64,000 bases of DNA from Octopus sinensis (GCF_006345805.1 NW_021832284.1:1-64000), one strand, 5' to 3'; shown: positions 27,601-42,600, counted from the first letter of the stretch. Notes: generated by a model from the letters alone, not told the origin. A program made the numbers and translations.

Positions 27601-30600
27601 TATATATATATATATATATATATATATATTTGATATAAAGAAAATGGTGTGTGTGAACAAAGAAAATCAATTTATTTACATAATACTTCTCGATTTCATG
27701 TCGCCGATGCACGTTTCAATTCCTACCTTCATTCATATATTAATATTAAATTGAATTTAAAAGGTAAAAGTCTCCTCAAAGCAAAATTGACGTAAATTCA
27801 TGTACATCCTAAAGGATAGAGTTCCTTACAAACAGACATACTAGCTTGTGTGTATGTTTGTGTGTGTTTGTGTGTGAGTGTATGTGTGTGCTATGTGTGC
27901 TTGTGTGTGTGTATTTATGTGTGTGGGTGTGTATGCCAGTGTGCTTGTGTGTGTCTGTTTGTGCGTGCGTGTATCTGTGTGTGTGTGTGTGTGTGTGTGT
28001 GTGTGTGTGTGTGTGTGTATGTGTGTGTGTGTGTGTGTGTGTGATTGTCAATAATGTATACATATGCATTTGTAGCGTCAATGGCGTTAGAAATAAACTA
28101 GATAAAAGTATCATCATACCAATGTTTTCTGCATCTGAAAAAGATGAAAATGAGAGTCTTGTAGAATTATAAAATGAATATACTTTTCATAATTTTACAA
28201 GACCCTCATTTTCATCCTTTTCAGGGGCAGAAAATAAGGTTATTATTCAAGGACAACGATACTCAAACCAGAAACTCCCCTAATCCCAAGGAATGTCCTA
28301 AGGAGATTTACTTAAGGGCTGTCTAATCATAATTTGCAAGGGTGGGTGGAGGGAAAATGGTACAGTACCCCGTAACAATGGAGAATATCCAACCTGTTAG
28401 GATGTACTATTCCGAAAGTTCGCCAAGGCATACTATTGTGAATATAACCGGGCAACGACGGGATACTCAGTTAATTTGTGTGTTTGTGTGTGTGTAGAAA
28501 GAGAGAGAGAGAAAGAGAGAAAGAAAGAAAGAAAGAAAGAAAGAAAGAAAGAAAGAAAGAAAGAGGGGGTATTTTGAGGAATATCATGCAAACATTCTCC
28601 TAAATTCCTAACCAAGCCATTCAACCAATCGCGCCTTTCTCAATATGCGTTCACGAGGAACCTACCTTGGCTCTTTAAATATACTTGTAAAACAAAATTT
28701 ATGATAAATCTATGCCTATAAATTATGGCTATTTGTTATGTTATACTTACATGTATTACAGTAACTTCCAGAGTAACCAGGTTTACATTTACAGGTGAAA
28801 CTATGTCCTTTCCTGATACATGTACCGCCGTTCTTACATGGTTTCGTATGGCATGGATCGACTAGAGTATAAAAGAAATCGATGTTTTATTTCACAATCA
28901 CATCTTTATTTACAACGGAATATAACAGAATTCGCATTTTGAATTTCCTGTCTAAACCTTTTACATATTTTCTCGATTTCTCTTTACTTTTTAAATCATT
29001 TTCTCCCGTATTCTTCCTGATTTGTAGCAAGAGAAATTAATTTTATCATCATCATCATCATCATCATCATCATCATTATCATCATCATCATCATCATCAT
29101 CATCGCCAGATGCGTTAAATGATGTAGCCAGTCATTGGGGTGCCACTAAAGAAACTTTTATTTTCAGCCATCGCCACTTCGTAGTAGGTTCGTTGTGATG
29201 TGGACTGTCCAGTCCTTAACGTTGTCAAACCAGGAATTTCTATGTCTGTGTGTGTGTATATAAGTCAGGACGCCATGATAGATCGTTAGCTCCTACACAC
29301 ATTTTTTCTCTCCTTTTTTTCTGTGTATCTTTCTGTCGAAGAGCGTAGGCTCGAAACGTAAAAGACTTTTTCTATTCCTGAGCGCTATACTAATACATTT
29401 GTTTGTTTGTACTCCACCTGCCTTCGTCTTTTGTTTACTTTCGAAAACTTTCCCTTTATATATATATATATATATATATATATATATATATATATAATAT
29501 ATATATAATATATATATATTATAATATATATATATAATATATATATATAATATATATATATATATATATTATATATATATATATATATATATTATATATA
29601 TAATATATATATATATATATATATAATATATATTATATATATATAATATATATATATATATATTATATATATAATATATATATATATAATATATATATAT
29701 ATATAAAATAGAGATAAAACCACTATTATGCAACTCAAACAGTAATAGACATAAACCAATACATAAATAACCAAGTGGTTTTATCTCTAATTCCTATTTT
29801 ATATATTTATACTGTGAAATTTGATTTAATACTTAATTGAATTTTTCCCTGTAAATTTGGAGTTATACTCCCTAATATTATTATTAGTATTATATATATA
29901 TATATATATAATATATATATATATATATTTGTATATATATATGTATACTTTTCTCGTCTAGGTTCAAGGAACGAAATTTTGAGGGAGTGGTTCTAGTCGA
30001 TTACATCCACACCAGTACGCAACTGGTACTTAATTTATTGACCTCGAAAGGTTGAAGACCAGAGTCAACCTCGGTGCAACGAAAAGACAGACGAAAATCC
30101 TCTTAGCATTTCGTTCGGCGTGCTAAGTTGTAGATATATATATATATATAGTATGAAGAAAATGGAAAGTAAAAATCAATTTATTTACATAATAGCAGTC
30201 AATTTCATGTCTCCTATGCAGGTTTCAATTCCTACCTTCATTCATATTTTCCAATTAAATTGAATTTAAAAGGTAAAAATCACATTGTCGTGCAGTTACT
30301 GTTTACATCTCGTTCAGATATTTATTATTGCTATGAAATGAATAGATTTTACATAATTTTACAAGATTCATTTTCATCCTTTTCAGAAGCAGAAAATAAC
30401 AGTATGATGCAAGGTCAACAAAATTAAAACCAGCAGCTCCCCTAATCCCAATGAATGTCCCAAGGGGATCTATAATTTTGAGGGCCGCCAAATTTGGTCC
30501 CCACTCACACCCTATTTTTACTGCCAGCTAAACTAAATACAAATTATTGGCGACCTAATCGGAGCAATAACAATGAAGGTACTACTTGAGAACCGTGGTC

Positions 30601-39600: not shown

Positions 39601-42600
39601 ATAGATAGATAGATAGATAGATAGATAGATAGATAGATAGATAGATAGATAGATAGATAGATAGAGATAGATAGATAGATAGATAGATAGATAGATAGAT
39701 AGATAGATAGATAGATAGATAGATAGATAGATAGATAGATAGAAAGATAGATAGATAGATAGATAGATAGATAGATAGATAGATAGATAGATAGAGATAG
39801 ACACCGCGAGTGTCAGGTTGCTCTCAAGCATTTCTGCCGTCCAGGACCAAATTTGTGCGACTTCTTTAGAACAAAGGCGTTTTATAGAGGATTAGTGGAG
39901 GGGAGGTGCGACGAAGTTCTCGGGCAGAATCTGGGCATCGACGAGAGACACCTGACCCGCCTGTCACGACAACTTTCGGGTCTGGACCTATGGACAATAA
40001 CCTAAGATCCCTGGCCTGCTAGTGCTATCGAGAAGCATTACCTATTCAGGATAAGCTCTACAGGCACAGTTCGAGACACACTGGGCCTACTTGCCCGAGA
40101 TGCGGCCGGAGCGACGAAACCGTTCTGCACGCCTTCGTGCAGTGTATATCCATGTCGGACCTGTGGGCTTATGCCGAGCGGCTGCTGTCATGTGTGGGAC
40201 ATGTCCGCCTGTCGGCCGAGTCTATTGTCTGGTTTGTACCGCTCCCTTCCCTCAACTAGGAAGACAAGGCAGTTTTCATCGTACTGGTGGCTATGGTGAA
40301 AGAATGTGTGTGGTGGACTCGAGCGAAAGGACAAGAGACAAACACTTATCTCTCTGGCCAATCGCTCATCAACATTTTCAAGTACCACTTCAAAAGGAAT
40401 GTGAGAATGTGGAGGCAGGTTTTGTCGCGTGAAAGTTTCAAAAAGTTGGGTGAATGTAGCAAAGATGGTGCGCGCGAGTGACGAAACCACTTTGAGTATG
40501 ATCCTTTAAATCATAAGAGAGAGAGAGAGAGAGAGAGAGAGAGAGAGAGAGAGAGAGAGAGAGAGAGAGTACATTGTACTCTTGCTTTTATTTCCCTCCC
40601 TGTCTGAAGTTACCGTGGTCTTTACTGTAAGCTTTTCTTTCCAATGATGAACCTAATATTGTTTGTTACTTTGAAAAAAACGATAAAAAGTTTTATTCTT
40701 TCTGTGAAACACGATCCCTTTTGATCCCTTTTTTTCCCGATCCATATTGATGGAAATTTAATATTTGTTTCCTTTTTTTTTCTTTTTCCTTTTCCATCTC
40801 CGAAAAGAAAAGCTCTACATTTGTATCGTCCCCTCCGTGTCCACCCCTGTGTGGCAATAATAAAAGTTATCTATCTATCTATCTATCTATCTATCTATCT
40901 ATCTATCTATCTATCTATCTATCTATCTATCTATCTATCTATCTATCTATCTCTATCTATCTATCTATCTATCTATCTATCTATCTATCTATCTATCTAT
41001 CTATCTATCTGTCTGTCTGTCTGTCTGTCTGTCTCTCCGTTTGTGTGTTTCCCTTTGTACTTTTCGATGCTATAGCAAATTATTAGGATTTTCTCAATTG
41101 CGACGGTTAATCTTCAGTTTTTCTTCCCTACACCCTTCAAATGATGATTTGGGGAAATTTTTGGAAGAATAGTTTTGAAAATTTATTAATCTTGTGAAAA
41201 CTAAGCAGGGTACATTCATACACCTTGCTTTTCATTAAAGCAAATTCCTTTCTATGAATGTATAACATTCCAAGCTCCTTTAATATATTGCTAAAAAGAC
41301 ATTTAGGATTATTTTTAGTGTTATACTTACACGAACGACGGTATCGTCCAATATAACCACGTCGGCATTTACAGGTGAATCTACGTCCTTTCCTGATACT
41401 TATGCCGCCGTTCTTACAAGGTTTCTTATAGCATGGATTCACTTGTATATAAAAGAATTAAAATTAGAATTTCACAATCTTGTGTATAATTACAATGAAA
41501 TAATGGAGAAATTCAATTTTACAAATTTCCTGTCTAGTGCTTTTAATTACTTTCTTTAAATAAAAAATATGAGCTTCGGGTTTCAAAACAATTTGTAAAT
41601 TTTCAAAATCTTTTTCATAAGCAAAAGCGTCTCTCTTTGTTTTTAAGAGCGTACTGCAAACAGAAAATTGGCCAAAAAAAAATCTGTCCTGAGGCTGGGA
41701 GCCGAGATTCATAAATTTTCAAACATTTTCTTCCAATAAAAATTTCCCCAAATCATCATTTGAAAGGGTGTAAGAATGAAAAACTGAAGATTAACCATCG
41801 CAATTAAGAAAATCCAACCTGTTTCGGTGTACTATGCGGAAAGTCCGCCAAGTCACCCAATTGCGATAATTACACGGCAACTACGGGAGATTCAGTTAAT
41901 GCGAGTATGTGTATATATACGTGTATATTAGAGAGAGGGGCGACAGAGGGATGGGGATTCATTACGTGGAATAACAGGCGAAGTTTCTCCCAATATATTT
42001 TCATTAAACAAGCCATTCAACCATGCACATTTCTTAATATGTATTCATGAGGAACCTACCTTGGCTCTTTAAATATACTTGTAAAACAAAATCTATGATA
42101 AATCTATGCCTATAAATTATGGCTATTTCTTATGTTATACTTACATATATTACAGTATCTTCCAGAGTAACCAGGTCTGCATATACAGGTGAATCTATGT
42201 CCTTTCTTGATACATGTGCCGCCATTCTTACAAGGTCTCCAATGGCATGGATTGACTAGTGTATAAAATAAATATGAGCCTTATTCCACAGTGTTCTATA
42301 TATATATAAGGATATAACGATAGAATATCCTTTAACGAAAGTTCTATTTACCGTTGTACTTATTGTCTATCTCTGTATATATTTATTTTCTTTGTCATCA
42401 TCTCTCTGTGTAAGAAATATGATTGGATTTTTTTTAACAAAGAGCTGTTCTTCACTCCTGCTCCAGAGCGTAGGCTGCTGGGTCACTCTGAAAAGCTCTA
42501 TCTGCGACGATTTCATCTCAATCGAACGAGAAGGGGTTTCTCCGTCCGAGTTGCGTATCCGTGGAATAAGCTGCCGGACGAGATAGTGAAGCTGCCGACG

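Follow-up and report, generated by a model that had tools for sequence, protein, structure and literature searches.

Described proteins of related design

The mussel foot protein mfp-2, produced in the foot, consists of EGFs alone apart from termini that bear DOPA. Mlig-ap1, a flatworm cohesive protein, has EGF and VWD-C8-TIL modules and a lectin domain alongside regions made extremely positive by Lys and Arg. Its cohesive function is blocked by heparin, and its richness in Lys and Arg impedes tryptic mass spectrometry (PMC6410801). More generally, marine adhesives often contain VWD, VWA and lectin modules (PMC6410801).

The product of the Octopus sinensis gene LOC115229549 resembles Mlig-ap1 in having a polycationic region, a lectin-type domain, a VWD-C8-TIL module, EGF domains and a high cysteine content. 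All of these elements are brought together in one protein, secreted by prediction, and the correspondence is read as an analogy of design, not as homology. In Mlig-ap1 the charge resides in unstructured KR repeats and the EGFs are of the calcium-binding type, whereas in the octopus protein the charge lies within the EGF folds; the lectin domain is C-type in the former and WSC in the latter. Any adhesive role of the octopus protein would be hypothetical. Mlig-ap1 is the closest functional analogue proposed for it.

The downstream VWD-C8-TIL module is shared with zonadhesin, the IgGFc-binding protein and the gel-forming mucins, and the VWA domain adjoins the EGF array as in the matrilins. Tandem domain amplification that varies between species is common to this group and the octopus protein, but the octopus EGFs are polycationic, not of the acidic, calcium-binding kind. 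Sequence matches include proteins named zonadhesin-like and matrilin-2-like, and the Pfam lists contain no mucin PTS region, MAM domains, transmembrane segment or matrilin coiled-coil. Membership in the matrilins was rejected, as the Pfam list (P0299) lacks the coiled-coil and the C-terminus consists of TIL followed by an EGF-like domain. Matrilin-2 itself is a distant match only.

Architecture of the gene

The window, meaning the whole 64-kb stretch of O. sinensis DNA that was analyzed, carries the RefSeq gene LOC115229549 on the minus strand. The protein model XP_036355134.1 maps to it as 17 GT-AG exons running from an ATG at 52898 to a stop codon at 18497, apart from a 2-aa (6-bp) indel. 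The domain order is signal peptide, WSC, EGF array, VWA, VWD, C8, TIL and a terminal EGF-like domain. Exon 1 (52859-52898) holds the start codon and the first half of the signal peptide, and exon 2 (52707-52745, ending in phase 1) the remainder. A 921-bp tandem duplication includes a second copy of exon 1 at 51938-51977, and exon 2 is repeated about 921 bp further along the gene, at about 51786-51824. The WSC domain is divided between 47072-47199 (N-terminal half, phase 1 to 0) and 43836-43959 (C-terminal half, phase 0 to 1); when spliced, the two exons match the eight-cysteine Pfam WSC profile (PF01822) over its full length with E = 1.6e-10 and 41.5 bits, against a cut-off of 27.8 bits. WSC is a domain of carbohydrate-binding type.

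On the other side of the EGF array, a single exon (26910-27482) encodes the VWA domain (Pfam E = 5e-43), followed by two VWD exons (24926-25173 and 23188-23495), a C8 exon (20263-20531), a TIL exon (19134-19324) and a terminal Cys-rich EGF-like exon that includes the stop codon (18497-18688), all of them within the mapping of XP_036355134.1. The Pfam values are 2e-17 and 6e-9 for VWD, 2e-12 for C8 and 6e-7 for TIL, and the domains are contiguous in the spliced model, in the manner of zonadhesin and the mucins. The original prediction had pointed to VWA and VWD modules in other marine adhesives, and the array indeed shares its gene with both.

The EGF array

The array comprises nine exons on the minus strand, 42255-28751, which is exactly the span originally proposed. 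Eight are 111 nt long and one is 114 nt; AG precedes and GTAAGTATAA follows every exon, and all nine begin and end in phase 1. Joined, they encode 333 aa with 86 Lys and Arg (26% of residues), one Asp or Glu, 53 Cys and 20 Tyr (6%), so that both the symmetry of the exons and the extreme charge that had been predicted (about 86 basic residues and one acidic in about 334 aa) are borne out. The array matches the Pfam EGF profile (PF00008) in seven separate stretches with E = 3.2e-56, placing the nine exons far above chance expectation. By the criterion of C-x4-C-x5-C-x8-C-x-C-x8-C spacing with a conserved Gly and aromatic residue and a significant profile match, the array is made of EGF-like domains; canonical six-Cys EGFs are encoded by seven of the exons, with a net charge of +5 to +11 per 34-aa core, while the exons designated B' and A* are short of cysteines, and Cys counts are odd in two of the nine. 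An AlphaFold2 model has a pLDDT of 77.5, and its best Foldseek matches are the EGF domains of Notch and factor VII. These are cassette-type coding exons with one EGF domain apiece.

In transcript order the exons read A-B'-A-B-A-B-A-A*-A. A1 (42145-42255) and the degenerate B' (41331-41441, with Cys3 replaced by Ser and Cys6 by Arg) are present in both RefSeq models; the cysteine losses of B' are also found in O. vulgaris. A2 (38746-38856), which ends in GKCC, is absent from XP_036355134.1, although its peptide occurs in the second model, XP_036354931.1. It is followed by B1 (37939-38049), which reaches +11 per 34-aa core, A3 (35186-35296; +9), the intact B2 (34388-34498), found in neither RefSeq model, and A4 (32383-32493), the counterpart of a 1.26-kb unit amplified 12-fold in O. 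vulgaris. The 114-nt A* (31157-31270), in both models, has lost Cys2 and ends in ICC, a degenerate state kept in O. vulgaris. A5 (28751-28861) is spliced onto the VWA exon through a junction codon T|TT encoding Phe, and Phe is found at this junction in O. bimaculoides as well. The exon at 31157-31270 had previously been labeled B, in a scheme A-B-A-B-A-B-A-B'-A, but we rejected that label because the intron 5' of it matches those of A exons (families D9, D12 and D18), marking it as a divergent A-type unit. The alternation of A and B thus holds for the first three pairs and is limited to them.

XP_036355134.1 uses seven of the nine exons in the window and XP_036354931.1 has 11 EGFs, a difference that may reflect ambiguous read mapping to near-identical exons and not real isoforms. 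Exon skipping, also suggested originally, is plausible, because the lengths of isoforms X1-X3 encoded by the paralogue LOC115209189 are 74 and 111 aa apart, multiples of one 37-aa EGF exon; in addition, the contig of XP_036355134.1 has nine intact exons, of which that model uses only seven. Collapse of the copies in another assembly had been posed as a reason to abandon the prediction, but an independent O. sinensis contig (VCDQ01000533.1) carries all nine EGF exon sequences in identical form. Together with the O. vulgaris copies at the orthologous locus, this led us to reject an assembly artefact.

Relationship to mfp-2 and to octopod proteins

The suggested likeness to mfp-2 holds at the level of the motif. 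Among 407 EGF repeats of the same spacing in a first search, the one closest to the octopus repeat was a Mytilus mfp-2-like repeat (21/34 residues, or 62%, identical to an A repeat, with a charge of +7), and Perna PVFP-5 (7qab) is among the PDB matches with E = 1.7e-9, although the best of these are Delta-like 1 and Notch1. The octopus array and mfp-2/PVFP-5 share tandem basic, Cys-rich EGF-like repeats of the form NPC..(R/K)PCKN.G.C...G..(Y/F).C.C..GY.G..C. The likeness does not extend to family membership, which we rejected. In the alignment against mfp-2 that the original prediction had called for, an annotated M. trossulus mfp-2-like protein is 31% identical to the array, as compared with 37-43% for Delta/Notch-like proteins, so mfp-2 is no nearer to the array in sequence than other EGF proteins are, and its octopod relatives reach 63-76% across the repeats. 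The mussel repeats carry +5 to +7 and include acidic residues, while the octopus repeats carry +9 to +11. Instead of an EGF-only protein with short non-repeat termini, the octopus array is one module of a protein with WSC on its 5' side and VWA, VWD, C8 and TIL on its 3' side, whose accession is entered in a skin-mucus proteome list.

The nearest relatives are octopod proteins of the WSC/EGF/VWA/VWD type, whose repeats share 63-76% identity with the array. In O. bimaculoides (XP_014776970.1 and XP_052822702.1) a signal peptide is followed by five, and a further 12, EGFs and then VWA; the repeats directly 5' of VWA carry +5 to +10, and identity is 63% across the EGF repeats and 51% over the EGF-VWA junction. 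The Argonauta hians homologue (GAB1606482.1) has less basic repeats (+3 to +6), with one EGF per 111-114-nt exon. One EGF per exon of about 111 nt is the rule in O. sinensis, O. vulgaris and Argonauta, with phase 1/1 in LOC115229549. A signal peptide, cationic EGFs directly 5' of VWA, and then VWD-C8-TIL make up the layout that LOC115229549 shares with XP_036354931.1, LOC115209189 and the O. bimaculoides and Argonauta proteins. The family members vary in EGF repeat number, in the presence of a second VWA domain and in their signal peptides, and LOC115229549 alone among those inspected has a WSC domain. Their records are automatic annotations ("uncharacterized", "notch-like" or "mua-3-like"), and our literature search found no publication naming these octopod LOC, XP or UniProt identifiers; LOC115229549 is an already annotated, unstudied gene.

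Outside the octopods, a profile search of 1.84 billion proteins found repeats of at least +8 only in a protein of the coral Xenia sp. (XP_046863735.1, "Notch-like isoform X8"), whose seven tandem EGFs carry +7 to +9, share the Cys spacing and are about 60% identical to the octopus repeats. This is a cnidarian protein, however, flanked by dermatopontin-like repeats and without VWA or VWD, and the likeness is most likely convergence.

Copy number and constraint

The orthologous O. vulgaris locus has 20 full and three truncated EGF copies, against nine in O. sinensis; the two species split about 2.5 Mya (PMC10700109). EGF copy number thus turns over fast between sister species, and the array has grown by tandem duplication of A units of about 1.26 kb and A+B units of about 3-4 kb. 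Across the 12 amplified units in O. vulgaris, variation is lower in exons (2/1332 cells) than in introns (125/13764 cells). The VWA exon differs between the species at one of 579 aligned nt, while introns are about 3.3% divergent. Four 1:1 orthologous EGF exons show eight non-synonymous changes and one synonymous, the WSC exons six and two, and the first VWD exon a ratio of 6.5:0.5. In O. vulgaris the ENA model (P0121) omits WSC and the entire array, though it merges several tandem units into a chimera and includes frameshifted text.

We examined constraint on a parsimony tree of 19 distinct EGF exon sequences (90 substitutions). Stop codons (0 vs 4.2 expected, P = 0.014), Cys losses (3 vs 11.1, P = 0.003) and gains of acidic residues (1 vs 5.5, P = 0.023) are all depleted, and swaps between Lys and Arg are enriched (10 vs 3.5, P = 0.0025). 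No stop or frameshift occurs among 29 full-length copies. Overall omega is about 1, with 71 non-synonymous and 19 synonymous changes. The Cys scaffold and the positive charge are therefore retained while loop residues change in a near-neutral manner, and from omega and the 8:1 ratio in orthologues, recent constraint on the loops appears to be weak or diversifying. A dN/dS of about 1 across copies had been put forward as evidence that would count against the prediction. That is the value found, yet the exons are coding by other evidence, so the ratio is not decisive.

Possible function

LOC115229549 probably encodes a secreted, mucus-type protein whose EGF rod binds negatively charged partners. 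The mature protein would be secreted and might multimerize by way of VWD-C8-TIL, as is the case for mucins, VWF and zonadhesin, with a rigid, disulfide-locked polycationic EGF rod presented near the N-terminus beside the lectin-like WSC domain. The rod would most likely bind polyanions electrostatically, candidates being sulfated or sialylated mucin glycans, microbial surfaces and other negatively charged substrates; such binding would make it a cross-linker or cohesive element of mucus. Its length, and hence its charge, would depend on how many exon copies the gene carries, and exon skipping may contribute. Taken as a whole, this account seems to us somewhat better than an even bet; what the rod binds, which tissue makes the protein and any part it plays in adhesion or against microbes are wholly inferred. 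The protein accession (A0A7E6EIP6) appears in a proteome list published for O. vulgaris skin mucus, and the peptides behind its identification may all lie in the VWA/VWD part; supplement S8 lists two EGF-junction peptides, both produced by in-silico digestion. The authors' classifier marked two in-silico peptides from the array as AMP-like.

The AMP-like peptides and the entry in the mucus list bear on the idea of a host-defense polycation in skin mucus, with the rod, whole or as released pieces, attaching to the envelopes of microbes and harming them. The extreme positive charge on a disulfide-stabilized scaffold would suit such a role, as would loop omega of about 1 or more and fast copy-number change, both common in immune effectors. 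We nevertheless think host defense unlikely, as the AMP prediction is purely computational, the array forms part of a large multimerizing protein with no evident processing sites and is not set free as a peptide, and the repeats have no amphipathic or hydrophobic faces. We find it slightly harder to credit a wet adhesive of the mfp-2 type, a counterpart of mfp-2 or PVFP-5 in which Tyr is converted to DOPA for gluing suckers, eggs or skin. The close Mytilus repeat, the PVFP-5 match, the Tyr content and the modules frequent in marine adhesives all speak for it, but generic Notch/Delta EGFs outrank mfp-2 in identity, the true relatives are octopod VWA/VWD proteins, the EGF-only architecture of mfp-2 is different, and the sole expression evidence is from skin mucus and not an adhesive gland.

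The VWD-C8-TIL architecture, zonadhesin-like paralogues in a tandem cluster, the excess of non-synonymous change in the orthologous EGF and first VWD exons and the large copy-number gap over so short a divergence (PMC10700109) might instead suggest a zonadhesin-type reproductive or egg-coat protein, changing fast through gamete recognition or egg-envelope assembly. This we hold to be quite improbable in view of the nearly invariant VWA exon and of the skin-mucus entry. A little more improbable still is that most of the EGF exons are decaying pseudo-exons, usually skipped, with only an isoform joining signal peptide to VWA being of consequence. The O. vulgaris model does omit the EGF exons, omega is near 1 with orthologous changes chiefly non-synonymous (in the WSC exons as well), and two O. 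sinensis exons are degenerate and three O. vulgaris copies truncated. Decay, however, is at odds with full-length copies that are free of stops and frameshifts, spare their Cys codons and avoid acidic residues, and with the inclusion of seven and 11 of the EGF exons in the two RefSeq models. Cationic arrays are also conserved in Argonauta and in O. bimaculoides, which diverged about 34 My ago, and the bona fide VWD, C8 and TIL exons downstream evolve equally fast.

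The EGF exon array

The array gene, LOC115229549, lies on the minus strand of the window. The original prediction placed nine basic EGF exons between 28751 and 42255, all of them symmetric in phase and together holding about 86 Lys and Arg residues and a single acidic one, and a six-frame scan with a splice-aware pattern search found nine exactly there. In transcript order, all on the minus strand, they are A1 (42255-42145), B' (41441-41331; Cys3 and Cys6 lost), A2 (38856-38746), B1 (38049-37939), A3 (35296-35186), B2 (34498-34388), A4 (32493-32383), A* (31270-31157, 114 nt; Cys2 lost) and A5 (28861-28751). 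Every exon is bordered by a pyrimidine-rich tract and AG before it and by GTAAGTATAA after it, and all nine are in phase 1 at both ends. Concatenated, they encode 333 amino acids with 86 Lys plus Arg, one Asp, no Glu, 53 Cys and 20 Tyr, and the Pfam EGF model matches this product at E = 3.2e-56 in seven separate stretches. The observation of a polycationic EGF array is confirmed. The predicted alternation of A and B exons holds for the first three pairs only, as the exon at 31270 (A*) is a diverged A-type unit and not a B; the intron upstream of it matches the introns of A exons (repeat families D9, D12 and D18).

Modelled alone with AlphaFold2, one A exon gives a mean pLDDT of 77.5 and the central beta-hairpin, and its best structural matches are EGF domains of Notch and factor VII, with E-values that are weak for so small a domain. 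Foldseek matches to this model also included POFUT1-EGF complexes among the best. Exons A1, A2 and A5 (CKNGGTC) carry the pattern C2-x4-(S/T)-C3, the POFUT1 O-fucosylation consensus, and the B exons (CKNGGAC) and A3 and A4 are without it. The +1 frame of the cationic exons is free of stops in eight of nine and would code for an acidic 37-aa repeat.

Gene structure and annotation

Apart from a 2-aa indel, the RefSeq protein of this gene, XP_036355134.1, occupies 17 GT-AG exons of the window, between an ATG at 52898 and a stop at 18497, in the order two signal-peptide exons, two WSC exons, the EGF array, one VWA exon, two VWD exons, C8, TIL and a terminal Cys-rich EGF-like exon. The two WSC exons when spliced form a complete domain (Pfam E = 1.6e-10), open reading frames for VWA, VWD, C8 and TIL lie downstream of the array on the same strand, and phase 1/1 is kept in every module from the signal peptide through VWA. 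The array exons are coding parts of an octopus gene that is annotated yet uncharacterised and whose structure is settled.

Our first two word-indexed protein searches, one with the array and one with the VWA-VWD part, missed XP_036355134.1 and a second RefSeq model, XP_036354931.1, despite long exact matches, returning instead generic Notch, Delta and fibropellin proteins at 31-43% identity and VWD-C8 proteins of O. vulgaris and O. sinensis without the array. Both were false negatives, and a blank from such a search on repetitive or low-diversity queries is not to be relied on. The idea of an unannotated or relic array, to which those searches pointed, was overturned by an exhaustive profile search of 1.84 billion proteins with the nine repeats, followed by a search seeded with an O. 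bimaculoides protein, which recovered XP_036355134.1 and its family. An assembly artefact, whether collapse or expansion, is ruled out by two O. sinensis contigs and the O. vulgaris locus. The independent O. sinensis contig VCDQ01000533.1 (L004), on which XP_036355134.1 is annotated, is 99.5% identical to the window over 43 kb and holds all nine EGF exons, identical and with A2 and B2 included, so that the predicted copies survive a check for collapse. The proposal that the array is intronic comes from P0121, the ENA model ("mua-3-like") of the orthologous O. vulgaris locus (L001; OX597816.1:25262005-25353857), and is rejected because that model is chimeric and partly frameshifted: it merges four or more tandem VWD-C8 units, passes over WSC together with every EGF exon, exits the VWA exon through an internal GT donor, thereby truncating the VWA domain, and includes an out-of-frame stretch of C8. 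The first-unit C8 exon itself appears frameshifted in the nanopore-based O. vulgaris assembly.

The models differ in exon content. XP_036355134.1 includes A1, B', B1, A3, A4, A* and A5 and leaves out A2 and B2, while XP_036354931.1 (1111 aa), on a 132.7-kb contig, has 11 EGFs, which according to the RefSeq protein model run A2, B1, A3, A4, A1, B', B1, A3, A4, A*, A5. The lengths of isoforms X1-X3 of the O. sinensis paralogue LOC115209189 are 74 and 111 aa apart, both multiples of the 37 aa that one exon encodes. Such differences in predicted products are compatible with cassette skipping, and they could also be the result of ambiguous read placement on near-identical exons. Annotations in this octopus gene family are unreliable at present: EGFs are read in the wrong frame, models are chimeric, and between two and four exons are missing or in excess. 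In the RefSeq and ENA models of LOC115209189 and its O. vulgaris counterpart, six to eight EGF exons are translated in the wrong +1 frame as HLIHAIADLARTVAYVLEEDGASAVNADLDIADETVM repeats, which looks like an annotation error from a missing 5' end.

The 5' end of the gene in the window includes a 921-bp tandem duplication (51700-52960, minus strand) that takes in the promoter region and the two signal-peptide exons with their start codon, giving ATGs at 52898 and 51977; the segment is single-copy in VCDQ01000533.1 and in the O. vulgaris locus. Signal-peptide exon 2 has a hotspot for indels at its 3' end (window 52707-52715; L004 ~10190; L001 ~10185). There the window has a single GCCAGT and L004 has two, so that the L004 protein gains "SA", and a 12-nt duplication of GAAGGTGCCAGT is present in O. 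vulgaris. These indels move the predicted signal-peptide cleavage region. Pseudo-exon debris lies near the first VWD exon (24415-24699 and 25474-25671, minus strand). The stretch between the VWA exon and that exon holds a second VWD start, truncated and frameshifted, and just downstream of the first VWD exon the 3' end of the VWA exon is repeated; O. vulgaris has the same layout.

Copy number

Introns of the window and of the O. vulgaris locus, compared by way of P0121, are about 96-97% identical, and the two species split about 2.5 Mya (PMC10700109). The O. vulgaris array contains 20 full and three truncated EGF copies, versus nine in O. sinensis, in the order A1, B', two units that each hold a truncated A and then two B exons, one partial A, a run of twelve A, A* and A5. 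Those twelve A units form a 1.26-kb tandem with a mean identity of 98.6%, as compared by script, and the exons are identical in 11 of the 12. This increase from one to 12 units in a sister species would be a clean natural experiment on the expansion of symmetric tandem exons. Exons B' and A* show the same degeneration in O. sinensis and O. vulgaris, and therefore their cysteine losses are older than the split.

Long tetranucleotide microsatellites of up to ~900 bp, (GATA)n, (TATC)n and (TGTA/TATG)n, occur in the array introns and upstream (33249-33521, 36100-36230, 40860-41030, 48398-50630 and others), and may promote the unequal exchange behind the change in copy number.

Sequence constraint

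Four EGF exons with 1:1 orthologues in the two species differ by eight non-synonymous changes and one synonymous change. The WSC exons differ by six non-synonymous and two synonymous changes, and the first VWD exon by 6.5 and 0.5. The VWD, C8, TIL, WSC and EGF exons are 1.4-4% different overall, mostly at non-synonymous sites. The VWA exon (window 26910-27482 versus L001 50734-51312) differs at one of 579 aligned nucleotides, with flanking introns at ~3.3%, a striking contrast in constraint between neighbouring exons of one gene. Pairwise dN/dS values for EGF exons range from 0.4 to 2. The whole gene apart from VWA evolves fast, and pairwise dN/dS is therefore uninformative on coding versus relic status; we rejected it as a test of function, as the accepted VWD, C8 and TIL exons behave alike.

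A parsimony tree of 19 distinct exon sequences required 90 substitutions, 19 synonymous and 71 non-synonymous, and counts in particular site classes were compared with those expected from a simple mutation model. These tests are rough and non-independent, yet more informative than pairwise dN/dS. Stop codons number 0 versus 4.2 expected (P = 0.014), cysteine losses 3 versus 11.1 (P = 0.003; all in the two degenerate lineages), acidic gains 1 versus 5.5 (P = 0.023) and K/R swaps 10 versus 3.5 (P = 0.0025). Among the twelve young O. vulgaris units, variable cells amount to 2/1332 in the exon versus 125/13764 in the rest, and there are no exon indels. Taken together, these counts describe a framework of cysteines and charge that is conserved, with loops that change freely.

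Relatives and charge

The best per-repeat matches in the profile search were O. bimaculoides XP_014776970.1, an Argonauta hians protein and a Xenia coral protein. XP_014776970.1 has repeats that are identical at 26 of 34 positions with charges up to +10, and is 51% identical to the predicted window product through the last EGF into VWA; its junction Phe is the Phe predicted by the T|TT splice in the window. A second O. bimaculoides protein, XP_052822702.1, has five and then a further 12 EGF repeats (+5 to +10), with a VWA after each block, and neutral EGFs followed by VWD-C8-TIL after the second VWA. The Argonauta repeats carry +3 to +6, one per 111-114-nt exon, and in a further paralogue of O. 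sinensis the repeats, 21 in number, are slightly acidic. Tandem amplification of EGFs is thus a family trait, and strong positive charge marks particular arrays.

The core charge of the octopus repeat is +9 for A and +11 for B. The maximum among 691 EGF repeats of the first match set was +7, and among 1,943 repeats of the same spacing in the best 150 proteins of the profile search, charges of at least +8 were found in the Xenia protein only, apart from one O. bimaculoides family member. Xenia sp. XP_046863735.1 (isoform X8) contains seven tandem EGFs that share this Cys spacing and carry +7 to +9, flanked by dermatopontin-like repeats, and its polycationic array is probably of independent origin.

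The suggested likeness to mussel adhesive mfp-2 stands as an analogy at the level of the motif. A Mytilus mfp-2-like repeat, the most basic of the first match set, is 62% identical to the octopus A repeat, and PVFP-5 is a PDB match. It does not extend to family membership, as an annotated mfp-2-like protein is only 31% identical overall, below Delta and Notch, the architecture of the octopus protein is unlike that of mfp-2, and its true relatives are octopod. The nearest analogue in design is the flatworm protein Mlig-ap1, which combines extremely positive K/R regions with lectin, VWD-C8-TIL and EGF modules, and whose cohesive action is blocked by heparin (PMC6410801).

Possible role

The accession of this protein appears in the 2024 skin-mucus proteome data. 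Two of its peptides, which cross the junctions WSC-A1 and A*-A5, are listed in Supplementary Data S8; these peptides are in-silico digests, not spectra. The protein did not turn up in the 2023 skin-mucus proteome data, and the LOC, XP and UniProt identifiers of this gene were not found in the main text of any of the papers searched. Tryptic proteomics is expected to under-sample the array, since trypsin cuts it into very short peptides; for Mlig-ap1, K/R richness hinders tryptic mass spectrometry (PMC6410801).

Composition, domain context, the one proteome listing and analogy together suggest that the array most likely serves a multimeric mucus protein, which is secreted, as a rod that binds polyanions and cross-links, although adhesive, antimicrobial or reproductive roles may apply instead. 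A fuller and rather doubtful version of the mucus-rod proposal is that octopuses fused a lectin-like WSC and a mucin-type multimerisation module to a polycationic EGF "charge rod" of their own, convergent with mfp-2/PVFP-5 and Mlig-ap1. In skin mucus the rod would cross-link electrostatically, bring about coacervation or trap microbes. Unequal crossing-over would set its length, and so its charge, over evolutionary time (nine versus at least 20 repeats in ~2.5 My), and cassette-exon skipping might tune its length within one animal. If this is true, the array is a folded, disulfide-locked polycation with +9 to +11 per typical 34-residue EGF core and hardly any acidic residues, a charge density otherwise seen in disordered K/R repeats or small peptides. 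It would then give cephalopods a place among the few marine proteins of adhesion or cohesion that are molecularly defined, and be a modular, recombinantly tractable unit for studies of polyanion binding and coacervation. The sequence is already in databases; we found no description in the literature of an EGF scaffold this charged, nor of the array doubling between sister species.

Transposable elements in the window

A mariner-type transposase reading frame (21821-22813, minus strand), uninterrupted over 331 aa (Pfam Transposase_1, E = 2.7e-22), occupies the intron between the second VWD exon and C8. Upstream of the gene, also on the minus strand, are retrotransposon reverse-transcriptase-like reading frames at 55078-57279 (734 aa), 59353-62079 (909 aa) and 62859-63998 (380 aa). 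Fragments of zf-RVT lie within the array introns, for example at 36450-37088, and such insertions may explain part of the length variation of the B-to-A introns.
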